This document shows positions 21,725 through 53,857 of a DNA stretch of 64,000 nt, in pieces. The stretch is from NCBI GenBank assembly GCA_030390025.1, contig CM059430.1, positions 73,160,001-73,224,000 on the forward strand, in the 5' to 3' direction. Made by a program: the position numbers and the translations under genes. Position 1 is the first letter of the stretch. Each line of letters begins with the position of its first letter. The notes under the pieces are model-generated. The model did not search any database, was not told where the DNA came from, and saw only the letters and a program-made list of their open reading frames with translations. The stretch is from Squalus acanthias. Its lineage: Eukaryota.

Positions 21725-21904
21725 NNNNNNNNNNNNNNNNNNNNNNNNNNNNNNNNNNNNNNNNNNNNNNNNNNNNNNNNNNNNNNNNNNNNNNNNNNNN
21801 NNNNNNNNNNNNNNNNNNNNNNNNNNNNNNNNNNNNNNNNNNNNNNNNNNNNNNNNNNNNNNNNNNNNNNNNNNNNNNNNNNNNNNNNNNNNNNNNNNNN
21901 NNNN
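21725..21904. other. Assembly gap (N)
   Basis: Run of N. Confidence 1.
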
Positions 21905-25567: not shown

Positions 25568-25622
25568 ATGGTTGTGGGTGATGTGCTGCGTCGCATGTTC
25601 ATCATGAGCATTGTTTCTCCAG
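25568..25622 (+). CDS. Gene A exon 1, leader ([18 protein letters not shown])
   Basis: ATG at 25568, 55 nt, donor CAG|GTAAAA in phase 1. Completes a plausible signal peptide with VFLGTSA from exon 2. Confidence 0.75.
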
Positions 25623-28600
25623 GTAAAACAATCTTGTTTCGTCTTTGCTAAACAGGAACGAATACATAAATAAAACCTTTACAAGTGCTATAATGTTACG
25701 TTTTGGCTATTGCTGCTGTTCCTGAGTTTTTTCTTCGGTTTATGCATTTTTTTATCGCACGTGTTTCTCAGTATAAATCAGAAAAAAAAGGATAAATGTG
25801 GGACTAAGCGTGCTACTTTAGCGAAGAAACACATTCGCATGCGCTGAACTAGTCAGAAAGATCTGTACATGCAATCACTAATATATTAGTTAGCTGGGCG
25901 GACGGTATTATTGTGCCAGCAGATGCCATATATCCCATGTATGAACGCTGTAGTCGAATTTGTTTTTATTTTCTTGACAGTTTTTCTTGGAACATCGGCC
26001 AAAGTAACTCAGATCAATGAAAGAAAGATCACACTCATTGGTTCAAATGTTTCTTTCTATTGCACTTTCCCGCTTTATCAAGAGCTCGCAGAAATTACGG
26101 TGTCCTGGTGGAGACACGGGTACAATAGATACTTACAACCAGACAGTCGGAAAGCGTTCCAAACAAAGAGAAGCTCTAGCAACTTCCACCTTCTGAATGT
26201 GAATACACTGGACGCCGGAATGTATTACTGTGCAGTGACATATCAGGGAAAATCTATGGGAAACGGAACTGGTGCACAACTGGCTGTATATGGTAAGGGT
26301 CGAGTTGTATCTACATCGATATTCAAACGGTATTTAAGAAGGAAAACAAAAATATGATTTTATTGTTGTTACAGACGTTGTTTCCACGGAAATAAGTATC
26401 GACGGTGTATGCATTTGTTATTGTAAATCTCGTTAATGCCATCTCATTATATAGCGAATTCAGAACACGTTATACGTTAAACATCTTACATTTCAACGAA
26501 TGGTTCACTACTTTGATCTCAATGAAATGCCAATCCTGCTACTCTATTCGACGTATCAATTAACGAAAAGAGCTTACTTTTCATCAGTGTCATGGATAAA
26601 ATATGCACCGGTTATGTTCCCCACTTCATGGTCTGTGCCATAATTAAGGTTCAATGATGATAATATACAACCAGGAATTAGTCTGGAATCAAAAGATTGA
26701 CTTTATTCCCATTCCAGGAATTAAGTGCATAACCCATTTGGTATTTGCTAATATAACAGTCATTGCAATTCAAAGTAATTCATTCCATATCAATCTTACT
26801 TTGACTTGACAAGTCCTATTTACAATTATTCTTACCCATGCANNNNNNNNNNNNNNNNNNNNNNNNNNNNNNNNNNNNNNNNNNNNNNNNNNNNNNNNNN
26901 NNNNNNNNNNNNNNNNNNNNNNNNNNNNNNNNNNNNNNNNNNNNNNNNNNNNNNNNNNNNNNNNNNNNNNNNNNNNNNNNNNNNNNNNNNNNNATCTATC
27001 TATATATCTAACATATTCATCAACTATTTATTTATTTAATAATACATATATTCATTTATTTTTTATTTTTTCAAAGAGGAGCCACTTTCTTGTATGGAAA
27101 CAGGAGACTTTAATTTTTGAGCAGAAACATTTTTTCTTTTGCTTCCATTTCCAGTTTTTCAGATGCAAGCGTATTTTTTTTATAACTTTCAAGAAAAGCC
27201 GAAATGCAGGAAGCTGCTTTTGTCCTGACTGAGATGCCACTGAGTGTTGAAGGCCCGAATATCAGAACAAATTCTGCATAACTGCAACAGTTTCAAGTTC
27301 AACAAGCAGAGCTATATGTAGAAATAATAATATATATGTGACAATTATGTCAAATTAATTCTGCTAGATTTAACGAGAGACAATATTTATAACATGATAA
27401 TTTAGTAGCTTTCGCAGAGGAAATCGGAAAATAAAATCATTTCGAATATATAATACAGAAATCAATCGATAAGGTTGCATAATAGATCATTGATAATTCA
27501 GTTACAGTAAAAAATCATAACAGGACTTATTTTATTATATTAACCGTCAGGTAGATTGAAATGAGAACATTTTCCTTTTGGGTGTAATATTCCCTTCTTC
27601 TTCATCTTCTTCTTCTTCTTCTTCTTTATTAAAGCTGTTCCACTTCCCCTGAAGATTCTCCCCAAAGCATCGGAAGGAGTTTCGCCTTCTCCTCTCAACC
27701 TCGAGTGCAAAACGGCCGGTTTTTACCCGAAGGAATTTAAACTCACTTGGCAAAAAGATGGCATTGAACTTATGTCTGGATTTGAAACGGTGCAACATAC
27801 AAATGAGGAGGGACTGTATGAAGTTTCCAGTTCTTTAGAAGTGAGACAACCTGTCCACAACGGGGTACCTTATACCTGTGAAGTGTCGCATGTTTCTCTG
27901 CTAATACCAGCCAGCGTCACCTACACCAACTACAAAGGTGATATTTTAACACGCATCACACTTGTAGCGTTCTGGTTTTTTTTCCACAGAAATCTGTTTT
28001 CTATTGCAACTCACCGACTGCAGCAGTTGATTTGCATATTATCCTTTTATCTCTGAAACTGCGTTTTATCGCAAGTCACAGTAATGGAACAAATGCCCTT
28101 TCCGTTCTGGCTGTCCGTCTAATAATATATAGGAAGGGGTGTTCCAATTAAATTCCTGGAGAATGACAGTTTTCAAAAGGAAAGTGTCCATATTGCTAAT
28201 AATTAGAATTACATGACATTTTTCAGTCAGAAATAAACTGCAAATGTAATTAAGATAGCAGAGTAATCGCCAAGCTGAGAAATTACAGTGCCAGGAAATT
28301 GCGTATTTGTTGCTTTCGTAACCAAGAAGTACTCTTAGTTAAGATACACTGCGTCATTCAAGCTGCTCACTGCATGTAGGAACATGGTAAATTTATTGGT
28401 GGTTGCCTCTGTTGGGTCATGTACGCGTAATTGCAAATTTTTCCTTTCAGATTTCATGCTTTCGGCATATATTCTCAAGACGAAACAAACTACTAGCAAT
28501 AGTGTGCTTTAACCTAAAACACAGAACCTTGTTGTACGCCCTACCATTTGTCACATTGGAATTTCATCCGAAGCCTACATTTAGTTTTCCACCCGTATCT

Positions 28601-31600
28601 GCAACACTAAGGGATTATGACTAATAATAGATGCCCGGATGTTGTGGTACGTAGTGACCGGACGGTACTCGCCGCTGACCTCGAATAAAGCGGCCACAAA
28701 AAGAATTAGTGAGCTCTGTGACGTTGATTTCCCCTATTACGTCGCCAATTTCATTCGGCGACATCTATAAAACATCTGTGGCATCCAGGAACAGTGAAGT
28801 CATCCAGAAGGCTGAGCAGCCAATCAAATTGAACAATTCTCACAGACAGCAAAACCAGGACGTAAAAAGCACTGATTATCATTAATTTTAAATCATTTTA
28901 CAGAGAGCAAAATAATTATTGGAACATACACATAGGATTAAAGTAGAAGCTCAAATATTGTAAATAAACTTTAAAAAAATTTGAATGGCATGGATAGAAT
29001 GAGAGTCCAGAATTATTACATTAATTTTACAGGGCCAGAGAGGTTGTTCAGCATTAATTATGACTTAGTAAACCGTTAAAACCTTACTTACACCTCATTC
29101 AACAAGGCATAACTTTTCCAATAGTTTTTCAGTGAGAAGATTGCGTAAAAAGTTCAAGTTTACGTTAAATCACTGATTATGTGCTGTTCACATCTGTGAA
29201 GACTGTCACATTGCACACTGTGGCGGGGCAGGGTGTCACTGACAACAACTTCTGGACTTCCGCGTTTAACTGCACATGTCCGGACGCCAAAAGTTTCTGT
29301 TAGTTTTACAAAGCACAACCACAATTCCTGGGCCCATATAATGGGTGGAATTTTCACGAGGTTCTCCCCATATTTATCCTTAATTTCGGTGGAAGATCCG
29401 CAAAACCCCTGGAGATCTGGCGTGAACAACTTTAATTCTGCCCCTAAGAATCAACAAATATTTATGTCATATTAAAATAAACACAAGAATGTATGACTTG
29501 CAGACGGGAACTGATTAATATCTGCCCTTGGTAGAATCATCTCCTGCCTGGAACCCGACTTCACAAAACATTAACCTGGGAAGAATTTCTGCGGGATTTG
29601 GCTGCTAGTTAGTGGGGCTGTTATCCTGTTAATAGTAAACCGCTTAACATCTGCATTAGAATAGGGAACGAAGGAATGTCTTGAGAAAACGGATTTGCCC
29701 CTAGTTATATAATCGCCAACTGTAACGTTGAAGCAAAAAGTGTCGAGTGGTAGAATAAGAGAGAAGTTGAAATGATTTTCAAGCAATAAGAACGTTATTT
29801 GGCTCACAGATTATCAGAAGGTATATGATTGGCATCCGACTTCTATTCTGCCCAGCCCGCTGAGGTACAATCTCTGATATGAAGTAATGAAGAAAGCAAA
29901 ATATGTGAAATATGAATAAAATCTACTCAAAAATGTAACAAAAAATTCTATAAATCAAATTTTCCGTTCCAGCAAAGATCACCCTTCATGTCCCAGATAA
30001 AAAATACCCTAAACTATGTACAGTCTACCCAGATTGTAGCTATAGCACTAACTCCAAGTGTTCAGTGCTAGTGAGCAGATGTGGAGATAGTCAGTCCTAA
30101 GATTCAGGACTTAGTCGAATCATTGAACCTTCTTCAATTGGAACAAATCCGACTGAATCGACAGCAGGCAGACAGGAATTGATGTCAGTGGAGTGATGTA
30201 GCTGAGAGGAGTTGTTGACCCCGCTGTCAGACTGTGCAATCTGCAGAGAGGATGAGGGCCCTGTGGAAAGACCCGAGACGTCACCGTGTTGCAGACATTG
30301 AAACTGTTTATACGTTCTTCAATTTTAAGATTTCGTATCTGTCTGTGATCTAAGCTCACTGAAGTTCATGTAAATAAATTGAAATGAAGCCTTAAACACA
30401 CAGCTCTTGGAGCCAACACACTCTCTGCCATCAGTTGTCTCGCTCTCTATCTTCCCCTCTATCTTCTTCTCTCTCTCTATGTGTGTGTGAGTGTGTTTCT
30501 CTTTCTGTCTCAGTCTCTCTCTCTCGCTCTTTGGCTATGTCTATGTCTCTCTCTCTCTGTCTATGTACGTCTTTATATCTGTCCTCTATCTCTCTTTGTC
30601 AGTCTGTCTCTATAACTTTCTCTCTATTTATGTGCCTTCTCTCGCTCACTCTCGGGTTGTCTGTCTCCATCTATATATTTCGTCCCGCATACGAGATTAG
30701 CGTGCAAAGTTAAAACACATGGGATTGGGGGTAAGGCACTTACTTGGATAGAGACCTGGTTGGCAGACAGGAAGCTAAGAGTTGGAATAAACGAGTCTTT
30801 TTCTGAGTGGCAGGCAGTGACTAGTGGGGTACCGCAGGGATCGGTGCTAGGACCCCAGCTATTCACAATATATATTAATGATTTAGACGAGCGAACTAGA
30901 TGTAATATCTTAAAGTTTGCAGACGACACAAAGCTGTGTGCTTTGAGGAGGATGCAGGAAATCTCCAGTATGATTTGGACAGGTTGGGTGAATGGGCAGA
31001 TGCACGGCAGATGCAGTATAATGTGGATAATTGCGAGGTTATCAACTTTGGTGGCAAAAACAGGAAGGCAGATTATTATCTGAACGGCAATAGATTGGGA
31101 AGAGGGGATGTGCAACAAGACCTGGGTGTCCTTGTGCACCAGTCGCTGAAGGTAAGTATGCAGGTGCAGCAGGCGGTTAAGAAGGCAAATGGCATGCTGG
31201 CCTTCATGGCGAGAGGATTCGAGTACAGGAGCAAGGATGTCTTGCTGCAGTTGTACAGGGCCTTGGTGAGAACACACCTTGAGTATTGTGTGCAGTTTTG
31301 GTCGCCTTATCTGATGAAGGATGTTCTTGCCTTGGAGGGAGTGTAGCGAAGATTCACCAGACTAATACCTGGAATGGCAAGAATGAAGTATGAAGAGAGA
31401 TTGGGTCGATTAGGCTTATATTCGCTAGAGGTTAGAAGAATGATAGGGCATCTCATTGAAACTTATAAAATTCTAACAGGACTAGACAGACTAGATGCAG
31501 GAAGGATGTTTCCGATGGCGGGGGTGCCCAGAAACAAGAGTTACAGTCTAAGGATAAGGTGTAAGCCATTTAGGACTGAGATGAGGAGGAATTTCTTCAC

Positions 31601-34600
31601 CCAGAGTGGTGAACCTGTGGAATTCTCTAGCACAGAAGGCAGTTGAGGCCAATTAATTAACTATATTCAAGAAGGAGTTACATATATTTCTTAAGGCTAA
31701 AGGGATCAAGGGATATGGGCAGAAAGCATGGACAGGGTACTGAATTTGGATGATCAGCCATGATCTCATTAAATGGCATAACTGGCTCGAGGGGCAGAAT
31801 GGCCTACTCCTGCTCCGATCTTCTATGTTTAATGTTTCTATGTTTCGCTCTCTATCTGTCTATTTCTTGCTCCCCCCTCTCTCTCTCTCTCTGCCCCGTT
31901 TCTTTCCTTCTCTGTTTTTCTGATGTTTCTCACTACACTCCCTTTAAATGTCCCTTCTGTTGCTGCCCACCAGGTTCTACTGAGGGATTCCAAACCATTA
32001 ACTTGTTCCGTTTACTATTGGGGGTAATGGTGATTCTGGTGGGGACCATCCTAATCGTGGATCATTTGAAAACAGTCTCAATTTTAAGGTAAGATGTTCA
32101 TTCCTTGAATCAGATAATCGCCGACGAATTATAGCATTAACTCACAGGAAACAAAAGTACAGAATTCCTCTTTTGTGACTTCTGACATCTGGGTGGATTG
32201 TTTCCCTGGACATTGGCTGACCCTCATTCATTCTGCACTTTCTTATCCATATGATTATATACAGCAAGAAAAGAAAATCATATTACAGAGTGTGAAAGTG
32301 TCGTTCAGAGTTATACACATACCCATCTCCCATCCGAGGTTACCGAACACTCGCATCTCTCACACACTTTTAATTTACACACCTACCTCTCACTCACTAT
32401 TGCTCCTACACACATTGCTCACACACTGTTACACACACAACTGGTACTCAAGCAGCCATCTCTCACTCACTGTTACTTTACACACACCCCTCTCACTCTA
32501 TCTTACTCACACACCTATCTCTCACTCATTGTTACTCACACACCCATCTCTCACTCACTGTTACTCACACACCCCTCTCACTCTCTCTTACTCACACACC
32601 CATCTCTTACTCTCTCTTACTCACACACCCATCTCTCACTCTCTCTTACTCACACACTCATCTCTCACTCTCTCTTACTCACACACCCATCTCTCACTCT
32701 CTCTTACGCACACACCCATCTCTCATTCACTCTTACTCAGACACCCGTCTCTCACTCACTGTTAATCACACACCCATCTCTCTCTCACTCTTACTCACAC
32801 ACCCATCTCTCTCTCGCTGTTAATCGCACAACCATCTCTCATTCACCATGATTCTCACACCCATCTCTCACTGACCGTTAAACAACATCGCCTACCTCTC
32901 AGTCGAGAAAAATGTTATTTTTTTATCCGCGGGTGAAAATCGGATGATAGCGAATCAATATTCTGGATTACACTTGATCTATTTTCATTTGTATTGACTT
33001 CTGCCGAATCGTTATCACCTGCTTATCTCCCAGCGATAGTTTGAATCACCCTAGCTCAATATTTCACGCTTACTTCACGTTCAGTTACTCACCTACATCC
33101 ATTTCTCACTTACTGAGGTATTAGGAGACTGATTCTGAATAATGTCCCGATGCAATGCATTTCCAGAGATGAAAGCATGAGTCGTTTAATGTTCTCCATA
33201 TAATGAAACAACTTGGCAGTTTCCCACAGCACAGATAGCAGGTTGCAGACGGGCACCTTACTCTGTTTGACTTGTCCATGTGCTAATTTTGACATTACTA
33301 GAGTATTCAATTTATTCAATGAACAGAATAAATAATACGCGACACATGACGATTCGTGTGTGTCTGTGTCTGCGTCTGCGTGTGATTGGACGTAGGGCTC
33401 ATCCATGTCCAGACACATGCGCATATCTGTGGATAGAATCATTGGCAGGAACGTTGGCTGATCGCTGTCCTTACCTAGCCCTGGGACTCCACGGTTAATT
33501 GCTCCTAATCCGGCTGGGATCAGCTAACTCAACAGAACAGAAATGCAATCTGGATCCTTCCGCTGTAATGGTTCGATCCCAGCCACGCCGCGCTGAGCTA
33601 CAGGTCTGCTCCTGTGTTCCTGGACACTTGCTCCGTTATCTCCACTTCCAGCCTAACGAGCAGCTGGTTCCTGTGTCTGATCTTGTTGTGTAAAATTCAG
33701 ACCCATTTAACCTGGTCAATTTTTGGGAGATTGCCGCTTTACATGAGGGTGGAAAACAAGCATCAATAATCCTGATCTCTTATATACCTGGTTTGATGCA
33801 GAAAGCAGCATTATGAGATTCGCTGCCAGATTAATTAAAAGTAACTGGTGATTCTGATCTGGTATGTGGTGCTCATTTTTTTAAGCACCGACCGCTTCCG
33901 GGTCATTCTGAAATCTCCTTTATTTTTAACAGTCACACACCTGATGACAGACTGGCAGCAGCTGATCCCGATCTCACCGACTCCAGGAAAGCAGCGAATT
34001 AACTTCAATGAATCAGTGTAACGACGATGCTGAATAGGAATGTAAAGTAGAAAGTCGATTTGAAGAGGTTCATTCTGCATTAGATATAACGAGGAACCAA
34101 ATATATTTTAAGTTTCCTGGGTACAAGTAGCAATGCGGCCATTTGTAATTGTCTAACACACGGTCCATGGCCCTAATTCGATTCGATAATAATCAAACAC
34201 TTCAATATGACGGTAGGTTAGAGTGAAGTTCTCCCCGCTCCCAGAACACTCCGGAAATAGTCATCAAATGGATTGCTGCCCTTTCCTACCCCAGGGATTC
34301 CACGGCTAATTGCCCTGCCTCTGCTGACGAAGGGTCATCGACCTGAAACTTTAAATCTGTTTCTCCCTCCACAGACGCCGCCTGACCTGCTGAGTATGCC
34401 AGCATTTTCTGTTTTAATGTCAGATTTCCCGCATCAGCAGTATTTTCCTTTTGTATCAAATATGTATAGGGTCAGTTTCGCGTCAGTTTCAATTGTTCGC
34501 CTTGATCTCGAGACAGTTTCATTGACAAAGTGTAAATTACACGTTATTGGAGGCTGAGTAATGTATTTTCCTATATTTTTTGTACTTAAGAATGGTTGAT

Positions 34601-37600
34601 ATCAGGAATGTATGGTCCTGGGGGGAGGGGGGCGGTGGGCTGTCAGGAATGCAGAGTATTGAAGGCATTCGCCAATGGCCACGTGCCTGCCTCTAAATTG
34701 CAAACGTTTTGCCCGGCATTGAAGTGATATTTCTAAATATGGGCCCTGGACTTTGGGAGCCATTCACCGGCCTTTGAAGATTGTGACTCGCGAGATTTAG
34801 CTGCCAGTTGTAGAAATGTTTAAATAAACACGGCAAATGACAGATTTATTTTCACTTAATTTGAAAGAAGGAACAAACTGTTTTAACAAATCCTCACATC
34901 ACGAATAACAAGAACATTAATGCTCATAAAATATTAACAGCAATGGAGGTATGTGAGGCTCGAATGACAGCAGAATAATACTGAGAGCACGAACTGGTGT
35001 AGAATCCCTGCTCAGATACAGTGAGGGACTGGAGAAGCATCGCAAACATTCGAGTCAAACTGGCCGCGTCAGCGGGGAAAGAGAAACCACACGCATCTCC
35101 AGGTTAAAACTACCCGTGTCCTGCCCCAGTCACAGCATCACCCTGGGGACTAGTGCACCAAGTGTGTGAAGGGGTCTTACCGGGAGCAATCGTGGACTGT
35201 GTTAAACAGGTTCCCGTGTGCGCAGGTCAGCGACACACAGTCCGTGGAAAGACAGGTGAATTTCTAGTGCATGCTGCACCGTCATTGTGGAAGAAGGTGA
35301 CGGGGACTGAAGAGGGAAACGACTCAGACTGATGAGTCGGGCCGTCCTTTAGACTGACATCTACTCCACACACTCCAGTTAAGGGCTGCCCACACTCATG
35401 TTACTGCTCCGCACACTCCAGTTATAGGCCCCTGATCATGAAGGGGCTCAGGGGTCCCGCCACTCAGGAGATTCTGGATGATATTTCCTGTTACCCATCC
35501 AATGAAGAGAGCATTTTATTAGGGGCCCTGGAGTGTCACAGCAGTCCCGCACTGCACCTTTAACCGTTTGATCAGTAAAGCTCATCATTTGTATTCAGTT
35601 TTGTTGACCCAATAGCTTTTTCGAATCATAGAATCATAGAATGGTTACAGCACGGAAGGAGGCCTTTCGGCACGTCAAGCCCGTGCCGGCTCTCATCAAG
35701 AGCACTTCAGCTAGTCCCACTCCCCGCCCTTTCCCCGTAGCCCTGCATTTTTTTCCTTCAGGTACTTATCAAATTCCCTTCTGAAAGCCACGATTGAATC
35801 TCCCTCCACCACTCTCTCAGGCATTTCATTCCAGATCGTAACCATTCGCTGCATAAATAATGTTTTTCCTTAAGTCACCTTTGGTTCTTCTGCCAATCAC
35901 CTTAAATCTGTATCCTCGTTCTCGACCCTTTCGCCAATGGGAACAGTTTCTCTCTATCTACTCTGTCTAGACCCCTCATTTTTTCGAATATCTCTGTCAA
36001 ATCTCCTCTCAAACTTCTCTGCTCTAAGGAAAACAACCCCAACTTCTCCAGTCTATCCACGTAACTGAAGTCCCTCATCCCTGGAACCATTCTTGTTAAT
36101 CTTTTCTGCACCCACTCTAAGGCCTTCACATCATTCCTAAAGTGCGGTGCCCAGAACTGGACACAAGGCTCGAGTTGAGGTCGTACCAGTGTTTTATTCA
36201 GGTTCATCATAACTTCCTTGCTTTTGTACTCTATGCCTCTATTTATGAAACACAGGATCCCGTATGCTTTATTAACCGCTAGCTCAACCTGCCCTGCCAC
36301 ATTCAAGGATGTGTGCAAATATACCCCCAGGTATTTCTGTTCATGCACCACCTTTAGAATTGTACCCTTTAGTTTATATTGGCAATCCTCTTCTTCCTAC
36401 CAAAATGTGTCAATTCGCACTTTTCTGCGTTAAATTTAATCTGTCCCGTGTCCGCCCATTTCACCAGCCTGTCTATGTCCTCTTGAAGTCTATCACTATC
36501 CTCCTCCCGGTTCAGTATACTTCCAAGTTTTGTGTCATCTGCAAATTTTTAAATTGTGCCCTGTACACCCAAGTCCACGTCATTGGTAGTCATTTTGTTA
36601 TCTTATTTCCTTTTAGACTTTATTTGATTCCCAATTTTTGGCGATAGTCCCTCTAATGAGGACACCCGCCCTCCCTTTTCTTCGTTCGTAGTCCTTATCC
36701 GTTCACTTTCTGTGCGCCCATGATGATTGCCATGAACTATTCAGTTATATTGGAGCAGCAACCGCTACCTCCCAATTTTAAAATAGGAAATAAATCCAAT
36801 GAGAAGTGAGATGCACTTGTTAAAGTGCATCTCTATTTAAATGTTCACAACCATTAACAGCAGACATCCGGACACAGGCGATGTGAATCCAGACTCATGT
36901 CTCAAAGGTGAAACGGCACTGAGCTGACACACCGCCTTACCAACACCTGCAGTCACTGGAGAGTAACACTTCCTAAATAAGGGGAATTCCTTTTATGTAA
37001 CGGACGCCGTGGTCTCCACGGTCTGGGGTGTATGTGTTGCCATCCCTTCATGATCCTATCCCTGCCGGACACAAACACCCGAAATGCGGCTTAAATGTGA
37101 GTTAAGGGTAAGGAATCAGGATGTGGTACGTGATTCTCTGTAAATTATGTCATTCTGTTATTCAATGTGAACCGAAACAAAACCACTTCCTGCCGTGTTT
37201 AACTAAATTACAACAATAGTTCGCGATGACCTGAGGTCGTGAACGGCGCTATATAAATATAACCTCTTTCATTACAGTAATAGGCAAGCCCCTCCGAGAG
37301 AGAAGTAACTGGCCATGTATCATAAGGTCATAGAGTCATAACGGCACAGACGGAGACCATTCGGCCCATCGAGACCGTGCCGGCTCTCTGCAGAGTAATC
37401 CAGTCAGTCCCATTCCCCTGCTCTATCTCCGTAGCCCTGCAAGTTTATTTTCCTCAAGTGCCTATCCAGTCTCCCCTTGAAAACATTGAGTGTCTCCGCT
37501 TCCACCACTTCCGTCGGCAGCGAGTTCCAGTTCCTCACCACTCGCTTCATAAAAAAGTTTTTCCTCACTTTTCTCCTGTATCTCTTGGCCAAACCTTAAA

Positions 37601-39291: not shown

Positions 39292-39829
39292 TTCTTAACC
39301 AGAACAACCCGCCTTTACTGCTCTGATGTATCGGAACCTTGGTGAGTAGTGGTGTTCAGTTTTATTTCAGAACATTCTCACTGTTCAGAAAAAAGGATTC
39401 CCTAAAACATGTCATACGGATTATCTCCAAGTAAGAGATTCATTCTTCACTCTGTTTTTCTTTCGGTACAGTGCAAGCAACAACTATGCAACCCATCTAC
39501 TTAAAATACTGTATATAAATGGAAATGACAGGGACATTCTACATATTTATTAAAAACAAGCACTCAATATCCAGGATCATGAAAACTAGCATAATTAAAG
39601 TAATGAGACGGATTGTAACGAGGGCGCTGTCGCTCCTTTGCCGTAAATTCTGCGGAAAAGAGCAACAGAAATGCAGGAAAAAGGCGTGAACAGGTGTACA
39701 CCATGTTCAAAACACATTCACTGATAGTTATCTATCTAAAATGATGTTGCGTGCAGTAAGGAACTGAATCCTTGGGGAAGGATAACAGGGGAACAATTAT
39801 AAGTCGTGGTCCATGTTGGATCCAATGAC

Positions 39830-40080
39830 ATAAGAACATAATAACATTAGAAAAAGGAGCAGAAGTAGACCATTTGGCACTTCGAGCCTGCTCCGCCATT
39901 CAATAAGATCAGGGCTGATCCTCTACCTCGTCTCCACTTTCCTGAACTATCCCCAAAGCCCTTGATTCCCTGAAAATTCAAAAATCTATCGATCTCTGTC
40001 TTGAAAATATTCAACGACTGTGCCTCCATAGCCATCTGGGGTACAGAATTCCAAATATTCACCACTCGCTGAGTGAAGAA
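39830..40080 (-). mobile_element. CR1 3' end
   Basis: VNIWNSVPQ..FKTEIDRFL; tail repeat. Confidence 0.8.
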
Positions 40081-40084
40081 AGTT

Positions 40085-43045: not shown

Positions 43046-44153
43046 AGCAATTAAAGTGCAAAAAGCAGCCGCCAGCAGTAACTGTTTGGAATAAAGAATA
43101 TCAACCGCATAGAATGTGTGACAAAACCTTGTCGTGCAACATAAACTGCTCAACCAAGCGACACAAAGGAAAAGAAGCTGAGAATCTAGTGGTGATCTGA
43201 GTTCAAAACCGCAAGGTTTTGATAATGTTATTGGTTTGCAAATACTGTACACGAAAATATGCGTGAAAATATTCTGTCAAAATAAAACTGTTTAGTTAAA
43301 TTTGATGAGTGACTTTAGAAGTTCAGAAAACGTTAATAGTCTTTTGAGTTATCTCGAATATTATAAGCCATTGTTGAGATGTTATAATGCAAGGATTGTG
43401 ATGAACATAATAGAAACTGGGCTCATCAACCTTTAAATAAGGCGACTGAGAGGCTACGTTACAGAGTACTTCCTCAGTAATTATAATGGTGCGCGATATC
43501 CTTTCTTAACTTCCATGGCATTTGGGAGAATTCACTACACGAACCTCCTCCTTAATCTATTCTCTCCGGTATACAATCTGTATTGTGATTGAGTTCTACA
43601 AGCCCCATAGTAGCTACTTTACCTCCAACAATGGGTACTTTTCACAACGCTACAGCTCATCAGTGACATGTTGTGTGAATTTACACCCCTCTCCAGCAGT
43701 TAATGGCCTGCGCCTGGCCTATTTCAGACTAACCTTGAGCTGATTCCACTACGAGCCACACACCAGATGGGCTGGACGTATTGCCATGTTTTAATTGCAA
43801 TTTTAGCGTTATCTCACATGTATGCACAAACCTTCCAGAAGAGCAGCAGTAGATCTAAATTCAAATTGTAAGTTTCTGAAGACGACGAAGAATATTGAAA
43901 GTCGGTAAGGTACGAAACTTTCTTAAGTAATTTTCTTCTGTTCGTGCGTTCAACAAACCTGTTTTTTGTATATTTCCTGAGTGAGAGTTGCAGGAGCGGA
44001 ACAGGGAACCAATGCACTGCGCGTTGTAAGCGGAGCTTTCACCCTGCCAAGCCCAGTTCCTCAGCGGGCTGGAAATCGCTTTAGAAATGTTAACATCTTA
44101 CACGTCACTGTAACTGTAGTCACATTGGAGTTTCGAAAACTATAAACTCAGTG

Positions 44154-44220
44154 ATGTTTTAAAGTTTGTTTCGGAACGTTGCGGTTCTGTATTGTGCCAT
44201 GCTTGGGATGTTCTGCACAG
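44154..44220 (+). pseudogene. Gene B exon 1, leader MF*SLFRNVAVLYCAMLGMFCT
   Basis: ATG TTT TAA then a hydrophobic leader; CAG|GTATGT donor in phase 1; downstream in-frame ATGs at 44199 and 44208. Confidence 0.7.
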
Positions 44221-44434
44221 GTATGTGACCGATTTATAACAGGTTATGCAGTAGCAAAATATCGGAAATTGATCAACCTTTATATTTGTCTTTGTCCTGT
44301 TTTATTGGTCACCTATTAAACGTTGTGCTTTAAATTGCCGTATTGTGCTCATCACTGCTTTGTTCTGCATTTTAACTCTTCATATTCTGCTGTTTTTCAA
44401 GTAAATATTCTGCTATGATATCTATTTCCGACAG

Positions 44435-44755
44435 CTGCCCAAGATGTTTCCCTGAAATTCACTCAGTTCCCCGAATGTGTAGCGTTGAAAAGGGGTGAAA
44501 ACGTTACCCTACTTGCCACGTTATCTGGATTCAAGAAGGACGAGGAAATAAATGCTTTCTGGGGCAAGGTCGCAGACGAGAAATTGATAACAGTAACGCC
44601 TGACAACCGTAGAAAATTTGAAGCTCTACAGAATGGAACAGTTTCCTTTCATCTGCAGAATGTGACATTCCAGGACTCTGGAGTGTATAAAAGCAGATTG
44701 CAAGTTGGGACATTCGAATTTGTTGATGGATGCGGCACAGAACTAATTGTATATC
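44435..44755 (+). CDS. Gene B exon 2, atypical V-set domain with J-like GCGTELIV
   Basis: acAG acceptor; KFTQFPEC...GENVTLLAT...AFWGK...FHLQNVTFQDSGVYKSR...DGCGTELIVY; donor C|GTAAGT; frame open throughout. Confidence 0.88.
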
Positions 44756-44834
44756 GTAAGTGGCGTTCCATACCAATCTAAATGTCGATAAAACTCAGAA
44801 ATATTGGAAGATAACTTGATGGACGGATATATAA

Positions 44835-44901
<67 letters not shown>

Positions 44902-44917
44902 CACACACACACACACA
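44835..44917. repeat. Compound microsatellite (GATA)n(GACA)n(CA)n
   Basis: Direct observation. Confidence 0.95.
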
Positions 44918-44949
44918 GTATTTCTAGTAAAATTCAATAGCACAGATGT

Positions 44950-45280
44950 GTGGACTCCGAAAAGCATTTCCACCATCAACAAGGCACAAGTCAGGATTGT
45001 GATGGGATTCTCTCCAAATGCCTGGATGACTGCAACTCCAACAACACTCACGAAGCTCGACAGCATCCAGGACAAAGCATCCCGCTTGATTATCACCCAA
45101 TCTACCACCTTAAACATTCACTCCATCCACAACCGGCGCACCGTGGCTGCAGTGTGTATCATCTACAAGATGCACTGCAGCAACTCGCCAAGGCTTCTGC
45201 GGCAGCACCACCCAAACCCGCGACCGCTACCAACTTGAAGGACAAGGACAGCATGCGCGTGGTAACACCATCACCTGCAA
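44950..45280 (+). mobile_element. Family B LINE fragment
   Basis: KAQVR..AWMTATPTTLTKLDSIQDKASR. Confidence 0.85.
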
Positions 45281-46487
45281 GGATACAAGGATACTCGATG
45301 CCCAGGATATTCAAAGGGAGATTCTAGTAACTCCGGAAAAACAGCGCAAGTGCTAAAAGCGCGGTTTCTCCAGGATTTGAAATTATTTAAACCGAGGTTA
45401 CGGTGGAAGAAAGGGAAAACTCGTCGGGAATGAGAAGTCCGTATGTTTTTTTTCGTGCTGTAAATTTCTGCTACTTAACATAAAGGAGACATATTGACTT
45501 TTTTCTAATGAAAATTAAAAGGCGGGAATTAGGAGAATAATGTTACACGCAAAGATTATTTTGTAATAGGGAATACTTGTTCACAGATAGTGCTCAATGC
45601 TAAATCGATCACTAGATTTGAAACACCACTGAAAAATGATTAAAGGTGAATGATGTTAAGATGTGGGGAGAAGGAGGAAATTAGGAATGCATCAGTCCCG
45701 TTTCAGATCAAAATTCGGCAAAGACAAAAAAATCCATGTAACATTCTCTGGCGATAAGATCTCTACGGTCTCGAAGTAAAGTGGGGCTGCCACCGGGTCA
45801 CCGTCAAAAGCTCCAGAGCAACGTGATAAATGAATGAAAACGGACGGTTATATACGCCTCTGAGGTTTCTCCAAGTTTCCCATTTGAAGTAATAGCGGTA
45901 ACCTGGTGGGTATTGCGCGGAATTTTAGTTCCATTGTCCCTATCGAAAATTTGACACATCGGCTTGATCAGTTACTGGGCACATTTGGAAAACAGGGAGA
46001 TGCTTAAAGGAAATACGGTTCGATTAGTATTCTAGAGGTGGAAATCAAATGTGCAGAAGGGCTTTTATCATTGGACCATGTCTTTATATTATGCAATATT
46101 TTATTTCGAGTAAAGAAACATCAGTAGTTGATTGAGAACATTTTTAAACTGCCGCAAAAATAAAGCGATTTTAACCATAAGTGAAATGGAGATGAGCTCT
46201 ATGAAACTTTTGACAACAGAGTTAACTATACAGCAGAAGATTTCTTTAACTGACAATCATATTTATAAAATATCATGAGCCTGTACATTTTAAATTGACA
46301 TTAATTATAGTTGCGTAGTTAACATACTGAAAATATAAGCGCCAACTTTATATAATAACCGTGTTAATGTGAAATTGGACATGGTTCTCTTTCAGCTGAA
46401 TGTTGACTTCCTTATTGTTGTTTGGATCTCAGTCCACACTGGTTATCAAATGAACTGAAGATAAAATGTCGAATTATTTTTCCACAG

Positions 46488-46793
46488 TTCCTCCGACGCC
46501 TTTACAGATCTTCTCCTTTGTGCTTAGAACTGTGTAATCGACTTCTTTGACGCTTGAGTGTAAAACGGCTGCGTTTTTCCCGGAAAAGCTGAACATCACT
46601 TGGTTTAAAAATGGATCCGAAATTCAGAGCGGTATGGAACAAAATAAAAAACAGAACACAGCGGGACTGTATGAAGTTTCCAGTTATCTCCATGAAACAG
46701 GTTATTTGCATAGCGGAACGAATTATACCTGTCAGATATCACACGTCTCTCTTCACACTGGCGTACGTGTATATCACGTTATTCACTTTTCAG
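46488..46793 (+). pseudogene. Gene B exon 3, C1-set domain with in-frame TAA
   Basis: LECKTAAFFP...ITWFKNG...GLYEVSSYL...YTCQISHVSL; about 42/101 ungapped identities to gene A C1 by hand count; TAA at 46535; donor CAG|GTAAGT. Confidence 0.9.
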
Positions 46794-49700
46794 GTAAGTG
46801 GCATGCATGTTTCTCAATTAAAATGACGTCTATAATTTCTATATAATAAATAGAAAAACTGTCTTAATATAACTGAGATTCATCATCATGGACTGCGGGC
46901 GCCACTTTGCGCTTCCTTTGCTTCTTTTGTTTATGTGCCAGGCTAACCGATTTCGGGAAATCATTCCAATTACAGTTATGACGATCTGGGCCTTTCCTTA
47001 GCAGGTACATTTGTACATTTATCAGAAGTACGACTTCTACATTTTTGTCCCATTCCCAGCCCGGATATCGGCAACTTTCCGTCCCAATTGATAATGAGCA
47101 AGTACCGAAAATGCATCAACCTGCGACGTCCTGGTCCCTAATCTCTGGCGGATTCTACAAATCTCTCGCCAAAGACCGCCCTCCCCCCCTGTCCCCCCAC
47201 ACCCCGGTGAAATTCGGGCCCGACTGCCTGCTGCTTGCACGGGGATTTAGGCAGATTGTCCGAAGTTGGCAGATCATCCGCTAAAGTTAAAGGTCGAGTC
47301 GGAAAAAAATCCTATCCCGAAAATTCCACTATTATGTATTCAGACCTTAGGTGGGTGCTGCATTAACTGACCGAGCGTTTCAGGAATTTGAGATTAATGG
47401 ATAAATCTTTCAGAACTCGGGCATCGTTCCATAAGGCTGGTAACAGTACTATTTGTTTATCTAATATTCATTATTGTGCAAAATGAAGGTGAAGTTTCAG
47501 TTGCACAGAAACATTTCCTTAAATTTAAGTTAAACATGTTCCAGAATTACAACATTTCAATCAAAATGAGACGTGTGTCCATCAGTTGCACTGATTTTCG
47601 AGTATTACATGATTATCAGCAATACAGCAGATTAACAATATTTTTGCGTGCAGTCCCAATTGTGCCCATTTATAGACACTTCTGTAACAAATACATTTAA
47701 TTAAAGTTGCGGGACTACACCGTCATAAGCAGGAAATCATTCATTGACACTGACATAAATCGAAACAATACAAATGAAACACTTCTCCTAATGAAAAGTA
47801 ATCACTAACAGTGACAGTCTGTCTCTGTTAATCGTTTAACTATTTGATGGCTTTAGCCATATATATCTATATATTATTGAATAGTTTGGGCCTGAATTCC
47901 AGAAGGGTTGCCACGGTCCGCTGACTTACAATCGTTGGGAGATCGGCGGAACCATTGGAGCAAAGCGGACGAAAAGGGATGTCATGAGATGTTTATGAAC
48001 TTTACCCCGGATTCCCCTGATTTCCCGGCGAAGCTACGTCCGCAGCTGGGTAAAGCGGCCGAGGATACCTGCGGCTGTTAATTTTTTCAGCTACAGTTTT
48101 TTATTTGTGCAGCAACTGAAATAACTAATATGAACTTTAATAAATTATACAACATAGGGAACACAAAGTGCCATCTATTAAGAAATAGCATATATCGAAT
48201 TAATTGTCTTTCCGTCTTTCATTTAGGCAATTAGTTATTATTTGAATGCCTCCAAATGTATAGACTTGGCATTAATATTTTTGCGCAGCTTTTTCACACT
48301 CTGAGCTGTAATTAAGTTATGCATTCTGAGCATGTTAAGTATAATAGTAGCATTTAGACAGCTGTTTATTAATCCACAAAAGGACAAATGTTAGAATATT
48401 TATTGCATCCAGAAGAGTTTATATTCAGTTTTTAAAGAAGACATCTTTGTGCGTGTGTCTGTGTGAACGAGTGGATTTGACAAAAAAACAGCATTACGAT
48501 CACACGTTGTTATTGTCTTATGTTTTGTGCTACATAAACTACAGAAAGTTTTTTAAATTGAGGAACAGAGAAACATAGAAACATCCTTATGTCAGGGATT
48601 GCGAGAACCAAGGCACACCAGAAAGCGAGAGAAGGAGAGGGACATAAATGGAGAGCTCATTTCTTTCTTCGGGTGAATATTTTTAACAAAATAAAGTTTA
48701 ATTTTAAGCAATCTCATTGTCTCGCCTGTGGTTTGTGTTTTCGTGACATTTACTAAGGTGAATTTCCAATTCTTTATAGCTGCCAGACAAACATTCTAAT
48801 GCAAACACTTGAGGGTCAGAGGCAGAGGAAGTAATTTTAACTTGTATGGCTAGGCTAAATGTCCACAGAAAACTGACCAGGGTGCAAAACGATCTTCCAA
48901 TTCGTTTTCACCTATTATGTGCTCAGAACTAAAAGTTAAAATTACCTCAGGGATACAGATAGGGGGAGAGGCAGATAACCAGAGATTATTCTTCATTCGA
49001 ATTTAATTTCTTTCAAAAGAGCAATTTACACTAAATGCAGGCTCTTCCAAGGAAAGGAATACGAAGGTTGAGCATTAGTACTAGGCATAATGTTGAAAAT
49101 GGTAAAGGTGTCATAGAGCTCTCAGCGGAGGAGTGGGATTAATGAGATAGCTCTTTTAAATAGGTGGCAGACTTGATAGGCCGAGCAGCCTTCTTCTGTG
49201 CTGTAAGATTCGATGATTGTACGATTCATCAAATACCAAGAAGGAATGAATGGAAGTACAGACGTGACGAAGTGCAGAGAGGATTTAAGTTAAGGTGAGC
49301 GACAGTGAATCAAGTGTACAGGAGTATTTAGGGTATGAGTGGGTCGTTCACTAAGGAAGCCACAGAGAAAAGATCAGAGTGAGGAGTGCTCAGAAGGGAA
49401 GGTCGCAGTGGAAACGTAATGGGAGAAGCATAGCAGCAAGACGGTGGATGAATCATAAATACTGGGAGAGAGGAGGGGAAATAAGTCACTGATGGCCAGA
49501 GTTTCCCTGTAATCCCACCCAAAATGCAACCCGGAGCATGAGTTACCCTTTCCTCTTTCACAGCACATTATGCCACTCACCAACTCCAACATCCGCGGAT
49601 AGAGCATACATTCAGAGAACGTAGCAGAAGAGGATTGAAAGAGAAACGGAACTAACTTAGGGGCAGAGAGCTAAAGGGGAAAGAGAAGGAGAGAGAAGTA

Positions 49701-50160
49701 GAAGAGCGGAGGCAGAGAGAGATACCAAGACAAATGTCACAGATAAGGGGGATTCCATGAGGTATCTCTGATCTGGCGTCAGAATTCAAATGCGAGTCGA
49801 GCGAAAACCTCAGAGAAATAATGTACACAAACAAACCTAGACATTTAAACTATTTATCTGGGTTTGCTGCTAATCTCCCGTCGAAGTGCGGGGTGGGGGT
49901 GGGGGAAAGTGCGACAGTCCCGCACAATTTTAGCGTCTAGCCATTTCTCTGGGATTGCCACTAATCTCCAGCCAAAATTATTGCGAGACCCCGAGGCGAC
50001 CTCCGCAGAATTTCAGAGCTTATTTCTATATGTCTTTATTAACCTTACATTTCTTTTGAATTCAGAGTCTGATCATTCACAGCGCCAGGCTTGTAAAAGT
50101 AATATCACCTCTTTTATCTATCAGTTAGATTTTTAGGTGGAAGTTCTGTTTATCTTGCAG

Positions 50161-50274
50161 ATACGTATCATGGTTTTCCACTCCTGTTCCTGTATCTCCG
50201 TTTAGGATTTGGAATTTTTATTCTACTACTGGTAATCACCATTTTGAAGCTACTGAAATTACATAGACTCAAAG
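50161..50274 (+). CDS. Gene B exon 4, TM with Arg (DTYHGFPLLFLYLRLGFGIFILLLVITILKLLKLHRLK)
   Basis: ttgcAG acceptor, phase 1 to phase 1, hydrophobic helix followed by a basic stop-transfer stretch; GF...RLxxG aligns with the gene A TM. Confidence 0.82.
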
Positions 50275-51121
50275 GTAAAAGTTCACCTTTACTCAAATTT
50301 ATTTATGAGTTAATAATTTCAAAGTATTACGCTGACTATAAAAAGATGGAGAAAATAATAATTGTACCAGTGGAAGTAAAGAGATTAGATCAGAGCGAAG
50401 AGCAATTACCGGCTCTTCAATAAACCAGGCAAATGGTGCAGCCGGTCGATCACTTCTGGAAAAGAAGATATAAGCATCACACCTTTTTATTGATGCTCGC
50501 ATTGGACAGGTGGGCAATAAACTTTCATGCGCAGCCATCAGTCGTTCACGCTAATGTCAGCAGAAACTTGACTGAACTCCCAGAGAAAGGAAATAACTGT
50601 CTCTAAAAATATTGTGTATGTTAGTTTATATAGTTCTCTAGATATGCAGCCGGTTTCATAGCAAAGTTATAGCTGGAGACCCGGAAAACCATGACGATAT
50701 TACAGAGCAATATTTGTAGAATTTCCGCAGGGGTTTTCCCCACCTCTCATTGTAACTTGAGCTGCAACTTATAAATCTAACTGATGCTAACAAGGGTTGC
50801 ATAACTGCTATAAATATGGACTGTGATACATCTCACTCTGACATCAAAGTAAATGCAAGGTTAATAAAGGAATGAAAGATAGAAGCAATAGTCTTCAGTA
50901 ATAAGTAATGCTCCACAGGGCTTGTCCCAATTTTTCGCCAACATTTTGCCAGAATACCGATGTAGCCCTGTGAGTAATAATTGCTGCTGTGATATCTAAA
51001 TAGGTAGGCTCAGATACCCTGTTGGATATCACCATTCTCACGTGGAACTTAGGTGGGAAAATTATGGAAACCCCAGAAACACAGGCACAGGATTTCTCCT
51101 GGGTTCTCAGTCTCCTGCGCT

Positions 51122-52390
51122 ACAACAACAACAATTCATATTTATATAGCGCCTTTAACGGAGTAAAAGGTCCCAAGGCGCTTCACAGGAGCGCCAACAG
51201 ACAAAATTGGACACAGGACCAGTTAAGCAAATATTAGGGCAGATGACCCAAAGCTTTGTCAAAAAGATAGGTTTTAAGGATTGTCTTAAAGGAGTAAAGA
51301 GAGGTAGAGAGTCGGAGAGATTTAGGGAGGGAATGCAAGAGCTTAAGGCCTTGGCAGCTGAAAACACGGCTGCCAACTGTAGATCAATTAAAATCGGGGA
51401 TGCTCGAAGAGGCCAAAACTGTAGGAGCACAGATATCTCAAAGGGTTGTTGGGCTGGAAGACGTTACAGAGATAGGGAGTGGCAAGGCTTAGGAGGGATT
51501 TGTAAAACAATGATGAGAAGTTTAAAACCAAGGCATCGCTTAACCGGGAGTCAATGTTGGTTAGCGAGCCCAGTAGTAATGGTTGAACTGGACTTAGTGC
51601 AAGTTAGGACATGGGCAACAACATTTTGCATGACTTAAAGTTTACCAGGGCAGATCGGGAAAGGCCGGTCATGAGTGCGTTGGAATAGTCAAATCTAGAT
51701 CGAAATTTCGGACAAATAGCGTAACTGCACGTTTACGTGGTTATTCATCCAGAAAAGTCACCCCGTGGCCTTTCCGACGTTCAGTATGAACATTCATGGC
51801 TGGAATTTTAGCAGCGGTTGCCATGCTCTTCCGCCATGTTAAAGGAAAGATCGACAGAAACACGCGTGTAAATAGCGCAATGAACAAAAACATCCCATGC
51901 CGCTTCATTGAAGCCGAAACAGACAAAAATCGAAAGAAGACAAAGAGGGCGATACTTATAGGCTGACCAAAACTTGGTCAAAATGGCACAGGGAGAGTTT
52001 TAAAGGCGCATAGGGTATTCGCGATTAGTTTAACATTGCGAATTCTAGAGATGATGACCTATATGGCTGAAAGCACGGTTGCCAATGATGGATTGTAGCG
52101 ACGGGGCTCCATAAGAAGCAAGAATTGGGCAAAAACAGAGTTCTTAGAGTGTAGTAGGGTTGAAGAAGTTTACAGAGATAGGGCCAATGTTAAATTTCAA
52201 CACAAGGACGCAGTTTAAAATCTGAAGTATTGGCGGACCAAGAGCCAAAATAGGTCAGTTAACAATTGGTGTGGCGTGAGTGAGACCTTGAGCAGGTTTG
52301 GTTATTCGCAGCAGCATTTTGGATGAGCTGAAGTTTCAGGAGGAGTAAGTTCTGGAAAACGAACAGGCACGCATTTTAATCAGATAGTGT
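51122..52390 (-). mobile_element. L2-like LINE 3' fragments (~51122-51700 and ~51950-52390)
   Basis: Tail (ttg)n with gcgctatataaat on the minus strand; degenerate L2-type C-terminus. Confidence 0.65.
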
Positions 52391-52432
52391 ATGTTATGGT
52401 ATTACAGATCGTACAATTTATTTTTGTTTAAG

Positions 52433-52476
52433 GTAAGGACGTAAAATCCTCCTCTGATGCAGAGAAAATAAACTAT
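52433..52476 (+). CDS. Gene B candidate short cytoplasmic exon (GKDVKSSSDAEKINY)
   Basis: tttttgtttaAG acceptor and |GTGAAT donor; bridges the phase 1 TM donor to the phase 0 ITIM exon. Confidence 0.55.
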
Positions 52477-52537
52477 GTGAATCAGTCCAATAGAGCGATG
52501 ATTCTACTGCACCTAACTAGGAGCGTTTTAATACAAT

Positions 52538-53300
52538 GGCCCAGAAATTAAACATCGATGGTTCACGCGGGGGTAAGGATTCTCCGCGATATCGCACTCC
52601 ACGCCTACCTTTTTGTTTGGGGCCCACACGAACTTCAGTTTCAGAGCCTCTCCCTGTTGCAACCGTGCAGTGCTTGAGTGTGCTGGAGGTGCAATTAGTT
52701 CATGCGAGCTCTGGGATCACGTGATTCAGTTAGAGCCAATGGCAGCACACCATCTTTCATTCATAGTTTTGACAGCAAGGGCTGTCAAAGCTATGAATAC
52801 TACAAACACCCAAAAGAACAGCTAAACCTCAATCAAATTAAAAAAAAATACATCACATTAATAAAATAAGTATAGTTAAATAAATTAACCACTTAAAACA
52901 AAAAATTAAATTTTTGGAAAAATTTAAAATCTTTTTAAAAGTTATAAAAATAAACTTACCTTTCTTTAAAGTCTCTCAAAAAGATAAACCTGTTGAACAA
53001 AATATAAAATAACACTTAATTAACTACTTACCTTGTTAAAAGGCGGTCCTACGCCTGCTTTTTTTATGTGTAAAATCTTCACCACTTACCTGCGCGTTCA
53101 AACCTGAAAAAAAAGTAAGTGCACGGCATGCGCACAACCTATAGCGCGCACGCGGTTCACTTAGGAACCGCCCCCTTTGCAATTCACGAATTGCCGGTTT
53201 CCCGCGCATGCGCAGTGCATGCAGGGAACCGGCAGTTCGGGATCTAATACGCGAGAGTACAAAGTGCGTACCATTGCGTATTAGGTTTAATTTTCGGGCC
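52538..53300. mobile_element. Same MITE family, copy 2, inside a gene B cytoplasmic intron
   Basis: Identical TIRs and colinear high similarity to 2835-3585. Confidence 0.85.
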
Positions 53301-53623
53301 GATCTGGTAATAGAGAATTAATGGCATAAGGGTACTGCAGGGAGACATGTTTTATTGCTTATTATTTATTATATATTGAGTACAAACTTGCCATGTGGGG
53401 ATCATTAATAAATTAGCATTCAGAATAACTGTGCCTTGTGGCAGTGCGAACATGTTAAAATAGAAAAAATATATAAACTCAATTTAGAAGCAAAAAAATA
53501 AATCAATGAAAATTGCATTTTAGGAAATGGAACTCTGGCAAATTATTACGATTACATTTGAAATCTATAAACGATCTCATTCTGTTCAATGATATAATGA
53601 ATATTGAGCGAATAGATTTACAG

Positions 53624-53857
53624 GCTATCGAAGACACAACAAGTGAACAGCTCACTTACGCAACTTTGAATTTTACTGAACCCAAGAAGCAGTCAAACCC
53701 CAAGCAGATGAAAAAGAACAACGTGCACACAGAGGTACTAATAATTCCATGTGTACATGTAACGCTATTTAATATAAACAAATATATATCATATATATAT
53801 ATATATATATATATATGCAGCACTATGTCATATATATATATAGATATATATGTGTGA
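53624..53857 (+). CDS. Gene B ITIM exon (AIEDTTSEQLTYATLNFTEPKKQ...NVHTEV)
   Basis: tttacAG acceptor; LTYATL fits the ITIM consensus I/L/V/SxYxxL/V. Ends either at donor GAG|GTACTA (53734) or reads into (TA)n to TGA at 53857. Confidence 0.75.
   Translation, partial: AIEDTTSEQLTYATLNFTEPKKQSNPKQMKKNNVHTEVLIIPCVHVTLFNINKYISYIYIYIYICSTMSYIYIDIYV

Follow-up and report, generated by a model that had tools for sequence, protein, structure and literature searches.

The window examined here, that is, the whole stretch of DNA that was analysed, is 64,000 nt long and lies on the forward strand of contig CM059430.1 of the Squalus acanthias assembly GCA_030390025.1 (positions 73,160,001-73,224,000). A preliminary description, covering positions 25568-53857 of the window, had reported a tandem pair of non-rearranging immune receptor genes, each with leader, variable (V), C1-set constant, transmembrane (TM) and cytoplasmic exons on the same strand. 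Between 25568 and 55299 we find two genes of a common plan on the plus strand (Table 1); both have a split leader and single V and C1 exons, and a local search with the exon translations recovers exactly two V-like and two C1-like exons in the whole window. Gene 1 and gene 2 are 28% identical in their V exons and 47% identical in their C1 exons. The common strand and the leader, V, C1 and TM exons were thus described correctly, whereas gene 1, whose TM exon ends in TAA, has no separate cytoplasmic exon. The observation is partly confirmed: the exons are real, and the tail of gene 1 and the integrity of gene 2 have to be corrected. Relatives are cited below by their P numbers; the exons were searched singly against the databases.

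Table 1. Exons of the two receptor genes and the assembly gap within gene 1, in window positions.
Feature	Positions	Strand	Remarks
Gene 1, leader exon	25568..25622	+	ATG to phase-1 donor CCAG/gt; Met aligns with residue 1 of the leaders of P0194, P0048 and P0045
Gene 1, V exon	25981..26292	+	YYC and J-like strand in one piece; donor G/gtaagg
Assembly gap (N)	26843..26993		In the V-to-C1 intron of gene 1, 550 bases past the V donor and 641 before the C1 acceptor
Gene 1, C1-set exon	27635..27937	+	Contains YTCEVSH; phase 1 in and out; exon follows ttaaag
Gene 1, TM exon	31974..32092	+	NxxR motif, Asp-His at inner end, 10-residue tail; stop TAA 32090-32092
Gene 2, leader exon relic	44166..44220	+	TTG where relatives have Met; alignments weak, E 0.005-0.11
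Gene 2, V exon	44435..44755	+	J-like strand DGCGTELIVY; Ala and Ser replace both canonical cysteines
Gene 2, C1-set exon	46488..46793	+	In-frame TAA 46535-46537
Gene 2, TM exon	50161..50274	+	Phase 1 in and out; inhibitory-type TM; 3-residue insertion brings Arg
Gene 2, cytoplasmic exon	53624..53734	+	Phase 0 in and out; LTYATL (form of an immunoreceptor tyrosine-based inhibitory motif, ITIM); second motif NVHTEV in place of the VYAEV of relatives
Gene 2, last coding exon	55132..55299	+	QTYCAV and VVYGQV; stop TAA 55297-55299 overlaps AATAAA

All four exons of gene 1 are open, their acceptors are AG and their donors GT, and their lengths (55+312+303+119) add up to 789 bases, or 262 codons and a stop. 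The positions that are near-invariant in the family are all kept (10/10 V columns and 9/9 C1 columns, 19/19 together). The V exon received 134 tblastn matches from relatives, and the leader aligns with those of P0194, P0048 and P0045 at E 0.02-0.06 in a search space of 1.2 kb. The TM exon, with a tblastn E of 1.9e-8, is 64% identical to P0077 and 61% identical over 36 residues (E 1.7e-9) to the C-terminus of P0194 from Heptranchias, which has the same end point. Because P0194 stops where the TM exon of gene 1 ends, gene 1 requires no cytoplasmic exon. A separate exon of this kind was considered and rejected, since the TM exon carries its own stop at the P0194 end and no tail-like match was found in 32093-43500 (best E 0.2 or worse). 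The stalk cysteine is absent from gene 1.

The V and C1 exons of gene 1 are separated by an assembly gap. No reading frame crosses the gap, and no exon is interrupted by it. In the relatives, C1 begins immediately after the J strand and nothing is missing between the two; therefore, no exon is expected in the gap. Moreover, P0187, which has the highest V identity (48%), also belongs to the C1 clade of the gene 1 C1 exon, and this agreement fits a reading in which both flanks of the gap are parts of one gene. From these sequences, we infer that gene 1 is continuous across the gap.

Gene 2 is recognizable along its length and carries several lesions. In the leader, the first in-frame ATG is at 44199, which leaves 7 codons, and a stop lies two codons upstream of the TTG. 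The V exon scores 27.6 bits with the Pfam V-set model and has 86 tblastn matches of 30-35% identity; the two cysteines that it has lost are kept by at least 90% of the relatives, and its end branch on the V tree is 1.18 against a median of 0.22, or five times the median. The TM exon is 41% identical to residues 6-41 of P0177 (E 0.01, with 20 matches in the bin). Both downstream exons match the tails of relatives, the exon at 53624-53734 with a best E of 6e-6 (48+31 matches) and the last coding exon, which lies beyond the 3′ end of the stretch first described (53857), at E 7e-6 to 1e-5 (38+24 matches). The second tail motif has His in place of Tyr. In addition, the TM exon ends in phase 1 whereas the exon at 53624 begins in phase 0, and an exon that would link them was not found by similarity in 50275-53623. 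Because of the stop codon in C1, the missing V disulfide, the lost start codon and the linking exon that was not found, gene 2 is most probably a pseudogene in this assembly. The pair of signalling receptors that had been proposed for this locus is therefore reduced to one intact gene, gene 1, beside a second with a stop in C1 and without its V cysteines and start. Directly after the V exon donor of gene 2, a (GATA)n microsatellite of 18.5 copies occupies 44826-44899.

The preliminary description placed a J-like strand inside the V exon and saw no recombination signal sequence (RSS), and both statements hold. In each gene, the J-like strand stands directly before the phase-1 donor, so that V and J are contiguous in a single germline exon rather than in separate RSS-flanked segments, and no exact copy of the heptamers CACAGTG or CACTGTG occurs in 25400-28100 or 44100-46900. 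Since V and J form one exon, no RAG rearrangement is needed. The GxG glycines of the J-type bulge are near-invariant across the family. Short V-only gene predictions on other contigs read through the common donor after the J strand, and the single VJ exon is therefore a family trait.

The AlphaFold2 (AF2) model of the gene 1 V exon has a predicted local distance difference test score (pLDDT) of 91.1 and shows an A′ strand, a G strand that is broken or bulged at G95-T96-G97 and no C′′ strand. A full V-set fold with C′ and C′′ strands is not formed, and 55 residues lie between C27 and C83. The Pfam scores are 27.3 bits for I-set (cut-off 23.7) and 25.6 bits for V-set, just under the cut-off of 26. 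The Foldseek neighbours of this model are mixed (NCAM, CD79b, shark VNAR, PD-L1, NKp30 and SIRP-alpha) with no clear winner; NKp30 has the highest identity, 24%, among the matches listed. When a V-only profile of the family was compared with the PDB, it aligned the whole of T-cell receptor (TCR) V-alpha and V-beta, including J, at approximately 1e-10, and the matches included CD79b at 2.5e-12, shark VNAR at 1.5e-11 and TCR V-alpha at 9e-11. The ranks of the whole-protein and V-only PDB profile searches are dominated by multi-domain proteins with summed domain scores and say little on kinship. The ectodomain had been likened to that of TCR and immunoglobulin (Ig) light chains (IgL). By sequence, the V domain is no nearer TCR V than CD79b or VNAR; the likeness to these chains is one of architecture and not of specific kinship.

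The second domain is a true C1-set domain, as had been claimed. The C1 exons score 49.0 bits (gene 1) and 50.0 bits (gene 2, after the stop) with Pfam PF07654, for which the cut-off is 21. The AF2 model of the gene 1 C1 domain has a pLDDT of 86.8, and the Foldseek matches listed for it are all C1 domains, mainly of MHC class II beta2, with MHC class I heavy chains and one entry titled as an antibody complex besides, at query template-modelling scores (TMq) of 0.70-0.84. The PDB sequence matches of the exon are to the constant domains of Ig, UrIg2 and SIRP.

The relatives of these genes form a family of cartilaginous fish. When 1.84 billion representatives were searched by phmmer with the V exon of gene 1, 189 matched at E<=1e-3 and 70 of these at <=1e-10, with identities of 45-52% for the best; matches to the V and C1 exons alike, at E<1e-5, are found in 78 proteins, and a C1-set domain follows the V domain in 7/7 relatives tested. 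The chondrichthyan family that had been suggested is borne out: 17/18 matches of the relative P0018 and 39/40 profile matches come from cartilaginous fish, as do 10/10 and 9/10 of the clusters that were looked up (the tenth being unnamed). We count 19 species, namely 11 sharks, 7 rays and skates, and the chimaera Callorhinchus, and within the searches made the family appears to be confined to cartilaginous fish. More distant V matches occur in other vertebrates, among them Xenopus NCR3, catfish NITR and tandem VJ arrays of turtles, paddlefish, milkfish, opah and a frog. The automatic names of the members disagree with one another (SIRP-alpha-like, SIRP-beta-1-like, tapasin-related-like, NCR3LG1-like, Ig-lambda-like, CD276, H-2 class I-like and TCR-beta-like). 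The family had also been called possibly undescribed; our literature search, with the key J Immunol and Immunogenetics papers and all supplements outside its reach, found no paper on it, but its proteins are already public under automatic names that are often SIRP-like.

Receptors of both predicted signalling types, another feature of the original proposal, occur in the family. A TM segment is present in 77 relatives: the tail carries ITIM-like motifs in 37 of them, and 17 lack an ITIM and combine a short tail with an Arg where the TM segment begins. On the C1 tree, these types are intermingled (12 changes; shuffling gives a mean of 14.6), and among the scored members of the clade with the gene 1 C1 exon, 3 are activating and 7 are inhibitory. 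The C1 subclades, of which genes 1 and 2 occupy different ones, contain both sharks and rays; therefore, the subfamilies are old. The V and C1 trees are quick trees of few columns with many open forks, their references from outside the family are one SIRP-alpha, three Xenopus NCR3 and two catfish NITR sequences, and the V tree gives no support to the branch that joins the family together. The skate protein P0041 (Amblyraja radiata, 493 aa) has two C1-type motifs in a SIRP-like V-C1-C1 plan, and its first C1 groups inside the family.

On this basis, we consider it probable that the window holds two members of a cartilaginous-fish VJ-C1-TM multigene family, of which gene 1 (25568-32092) is predicted to be intact and of the activating type and gene 2 is a broken member of the inhibitory type. 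The product of the family would be a type I membrane receptor with a signal peptide, a germline-joined VJ-type Ig domain, a C1-set domain, a short stalk, a TM helix and a tail. The mean identity is 36.8% for V compared with 42.5% for C1, and C1 is the more similar domain in 78% of 1035 family pairs; this greater variability of V fits a role of V as the binding end. By analogy, the NxxR helix of gene 1 may pair at the cell surface with an adaptor of the FcR-gamma type that carries an immunoreceptor tyrosine-based activation motif. A TM segment of the NxxR type binds FcR-gamma in Xenopus FcR-like receptors (PMC2413239). The tyrosine motifs of the intact inhibitory paralogues suggest that they recruit SH2 phosphatases, and LTYATL and VVYGQV would do the same in a receptor of the type of gene 2. 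The preliminary interpretation is therefore partly supported, being right in outline and overstated for this locus.

Several points weigh against this reading. The contigs of four sequencing runs were aligned with 26101-32100, a range that begins within the V exon and spans the V-to-C1 and C1-to-TM joins. These contigs did not confirm the splice junctions: within that range, the C1 exon of gene 1 has zero depth in all four runs, no contig bridges the assembly gap, and the three joints listed all lie in repeats and none at a predicted exon border. The exon joins of gene 1 are thus predictions, no spliced contig having been seen in the four runs. Part of the V exon is contained in six runs, none of which is recorded as RNA. 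Two contigs of 305 and 269 letters, with 1 mismatch each, cover 26101-26204 and 26101-26190 and come from runs that we guessed to be RNA; the contig of a third run continues past the V donor into the intron and is therefore DNA. There is also no independent gene model, as neither the protein of gene 1 nor a close relative of 85-271 residues is present in a collection of 5.8 billion proteins, which was searched with the 155-aa open frame around the V exon under length limits chosen to include the 262-aa product. For gene 2, the stop codon could be an assembly error, and the alignment of the leader is weak. Finally, the predicted adaptor pairing, phosphatase recruitment and ligand derive entirely from motifs.

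The surroundings of the genes are AT-rich (G+C 33-50%), and reverse-transcriptase fragments are abundant throughout the window. Such open reading frame fragments, similar to those of long interspersed nuclear elements and on both strands, fill the introns and flanks (30624-31646, 35902-36351, 38285-38898, 41850-42776, 6900-17300 and 22600-23000), and at 30700-31900 the summed contig depth reaches tens of thousands. The intron between the C1 and TM exons of gene 1 also contains an unannotated repeat (28701-29300), whose summed contig depth reaches ~500 in three runs, compared with none in the neighbouring unique sequence. A tandem array with a unit of 29 bases (14.8 copies, 84% matches), overlapping a period of 103 bases, lies just downstream of the gene 1 stop at 32354-32872. 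A second assembly gap of 180 N is found at 21725-21904, outside the stretch first described. On the plus strand, 24457-24585 matches the part of the family C1 domain that holds strands E, F and G, with an E of 0.001 and one internal stop; this segment, ~1 kb upstream of the gene 1 leader, may be the decayed C1 exon of a third gene. In P0004 (Heterodontus francisci, 423 aa), the N-terminal 50-190 residues find matches in reverse-transcriptase fragments throughout the window, and this public gene model is probably a fusion of a repeat with a family member.

Among the alternatives, the one that survives best is that these genes are cartilaginous-fish orthologues or co-orthologues of the SIRP family, that is, known receptors under another domain count. 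We regard it as possible but doubtful. There are points of likeness: in SIRPs, too, a V domain that does not rearrange and includes a J-like strand precedes C1, and ITIM-tailed forms occur beside short-tailed forms with a charged TM segment. SIRP is the best sequence match of the family outside cartilaginous fish. P0018 has one match outside cartilaginous fish, and this is to SIRP-alpha of a rodent, at E 1.5e-11 and with 30% identity across 35% of the query sequence; a single alignment of the family profile spans both V and C1 of human SIRP-alpha (2wng) at 7e-32. The two C1 motifs of the skate protein P0041 and the SIRP-alpha-like or SIRP-beta-1-like names often given by the NCBI pipeline point in the same direction. 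However, the same pipeline gives tapasin-related, NCR3LG1-like, Ig-lambda-like, CD276 and TCR-beta-like names, so its SIRP names weigh little. SIRPs have a V domain followed by two C1 domains, whereas there is one C1 exon in each of our genes and one C1 domain in the relatives other than P0041. In mammalian SIRP-beta, a Lys in the TM segment binds DAP12, whereas the activating members of the family have an Arg in NxxR. The V domain is also not specifically SIRP-like by sequence, and SIRP is not among the best 60 PDB sequences with either the V exon or the V-only profile. The single SIRP row on the C1 tree has a branch of 2.72 and was used as the root, and hence this tree is no test of SIRP kinship; the window contains no flanking genes for a comparison of synteny with SIRP loci. 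We describe the family as one of germline VJ-C1 paired receptors, to which SIRP is the nearest named family by sequence.

It could also be argued that neither gene works and that the locus is a decaying, repeat-riddled one in which gene 1 is an open but silent copy. The several lesions of gene 2, the possible third C1 fragment at 24457-24585, the introns full of reverse-transcriptase fragments and the lack of a spliced contig would agree with such a history. We nevertheless consider it quite unlikely, given the open exons, the intact AG/GT borders and the complete set of near-invariant residues of gene 1. Moreover, the contigs that match its V exon with 1 mismatch come from small runs, in which low-coverage genomic DNA would rarely cover the V exon.

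A further alternative is that the genes encode ligands of the B7-H6 or B7 type, with a V domain, a C1-like domain, a TM segment and a long tail. Several relatives are named natural cytotoxicity triggering receptor 3 ligand 1-like or CD276 homolog by automatic annotation, PD-L1 V domains are among the PDB and Foldseek matches of the V exon, and the C1 exon of gene 1 also scores 26.1 bits with the CD80-like C2-set_2 model and 28.6 bits with the butyrophilin Ig-C model. However, the C1-set score is far higher, and the near-invariant GxG bulge, the NxxR TM segment with its 10-residue tail and the ITIM tails are features of receptors. The nearest V domains outside cartilaginous fish, those of Xenopus NCR3 and catfish NITR, also belong to receptors. 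For these reasons, we believe that a ligand of the B7 family is very improbable.

Sharks carry germline-joined Ig genes, and in those genes V and J likewise share an exon that is followed by C1. That our genes are simply germline-joined Ig light-chain or TCR genes, as the Ig-lambda-like and TCR-beta-like automatic names of some relatives might suggest, is nonetheless hardly credible, because the gene 1 V exon matches TCR V in the PDB weakly at best (1.2e-5, mainly from framework region 3 to J), the V model has no C′′, TM exons with NxxR or ITIM-like tails are absent from Ig light chains, and 39 of the 40 profile matches belong to the VJ-C1-TM family and not to Ig or TCR.

The reading that we prefer, a family of germline VJ-C1 paired receptors, can be placed beside several known systems. 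The genes resemble TCR and IgL chains in having a V domain with a J strand followed by C1 (and by TM in TCR), a split leader and phase-1 exons. They differ in that V and J form one germline exon without an RSS heptamer, in lacking the C′′ strand and in their predicted signalling through NxxR or ITIM rather than through the CD3 assembly motifs of TCR. NKp30 (NCR3) has a germline VJ-type domain of the same short, I-like kind, and the V domains of Xenopus NCR3 are among the nearest non-chondrichthyan matches; mammalian NKp30 has an Arg-bearing TM segment in its activating form. NKp30 has no C1 domain, whereas a C1 exon follows the V exon in both shark genes, and the Xenopus NCR3 V domains form a clade of their own (support 99) apart from all 101 family rows. 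The NITRs of bony fish are similar in being a multigene family of germline VJ receptors with activating charged-TM and ITIM forms, and catfish NITRs appear among the distant V matches. However, their sequences lie far off, as end branches on the V tree measure 1.6, and NITRs are not known to have a C1-set domain. A search of the ESM Atlas returned only general V-plus-C1 clusters, of which the second nearest, named SIRBL, is a lead only.

In elasmobranchs, UrIg and UrIg2 also have a non-rearranging single-exon VJ, a split leader and C1-type domains. By summed score (3.3e-17), UrIg2 (9dmx) ranks first among the PDB matches of the gene 1 C1 exon, but its per-domain scores of 17-23 bits are not above that of an Ig lambda C domain (25.5 bits). 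The part of the source available to us gives UrIg2 nine or more C domains and does not mention ITIM or NxxR (PMC12227049); in the shark genes studied here, one C1 exon is followed by a TM exon, and there is no series of at least three C domains. Chicken PRARP and Xenopus VJC1, which are named as non-rearranging VJ or VJ-C1 genes in two reports (PMC10751288, PMC11599192), are alike as far as the description in the literature goes. In the literature consulted, the non-rearranging VJ genes named for cartilaginous fish are NKp30, UrIg and UrIg2, and VJ-C1 genes are named for tetrapods (PMC10751288, PMC12227049).

Unsplit VJ exon plus C1 genes have been sought as relatives of the gene into which the RAG transposon inserted. 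A large VJ-C1-TM family with both signalling types, which ranges from chimaeras to rays, would supply a further candidate, one that resembles a TCR chain. We regard as unlikely the more ambitious proposal that the family is a surviving, never-rearranged lineage of the VJ-C1-TM chain that gave rise to TCR and Ig chains, kept in all cartilaginous fish, chimaeras included, and recruited to natural killer (NK)-type activating and inhibitory signalling. If this proposal is true, the family would join UrIg and UrIg2 as the third non-rearranging relative of antigen receptors in sharks, and it alone would have the TCR-like plan of a two-domain membrane chain. For the window alone the gain is smaller, as one intact and one broken member are added to a family that goes under misleading automatic names. 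For sharks, the family would provide a candidate paired receptor system of the NK or myeloid type, none of which was found in our literature search.

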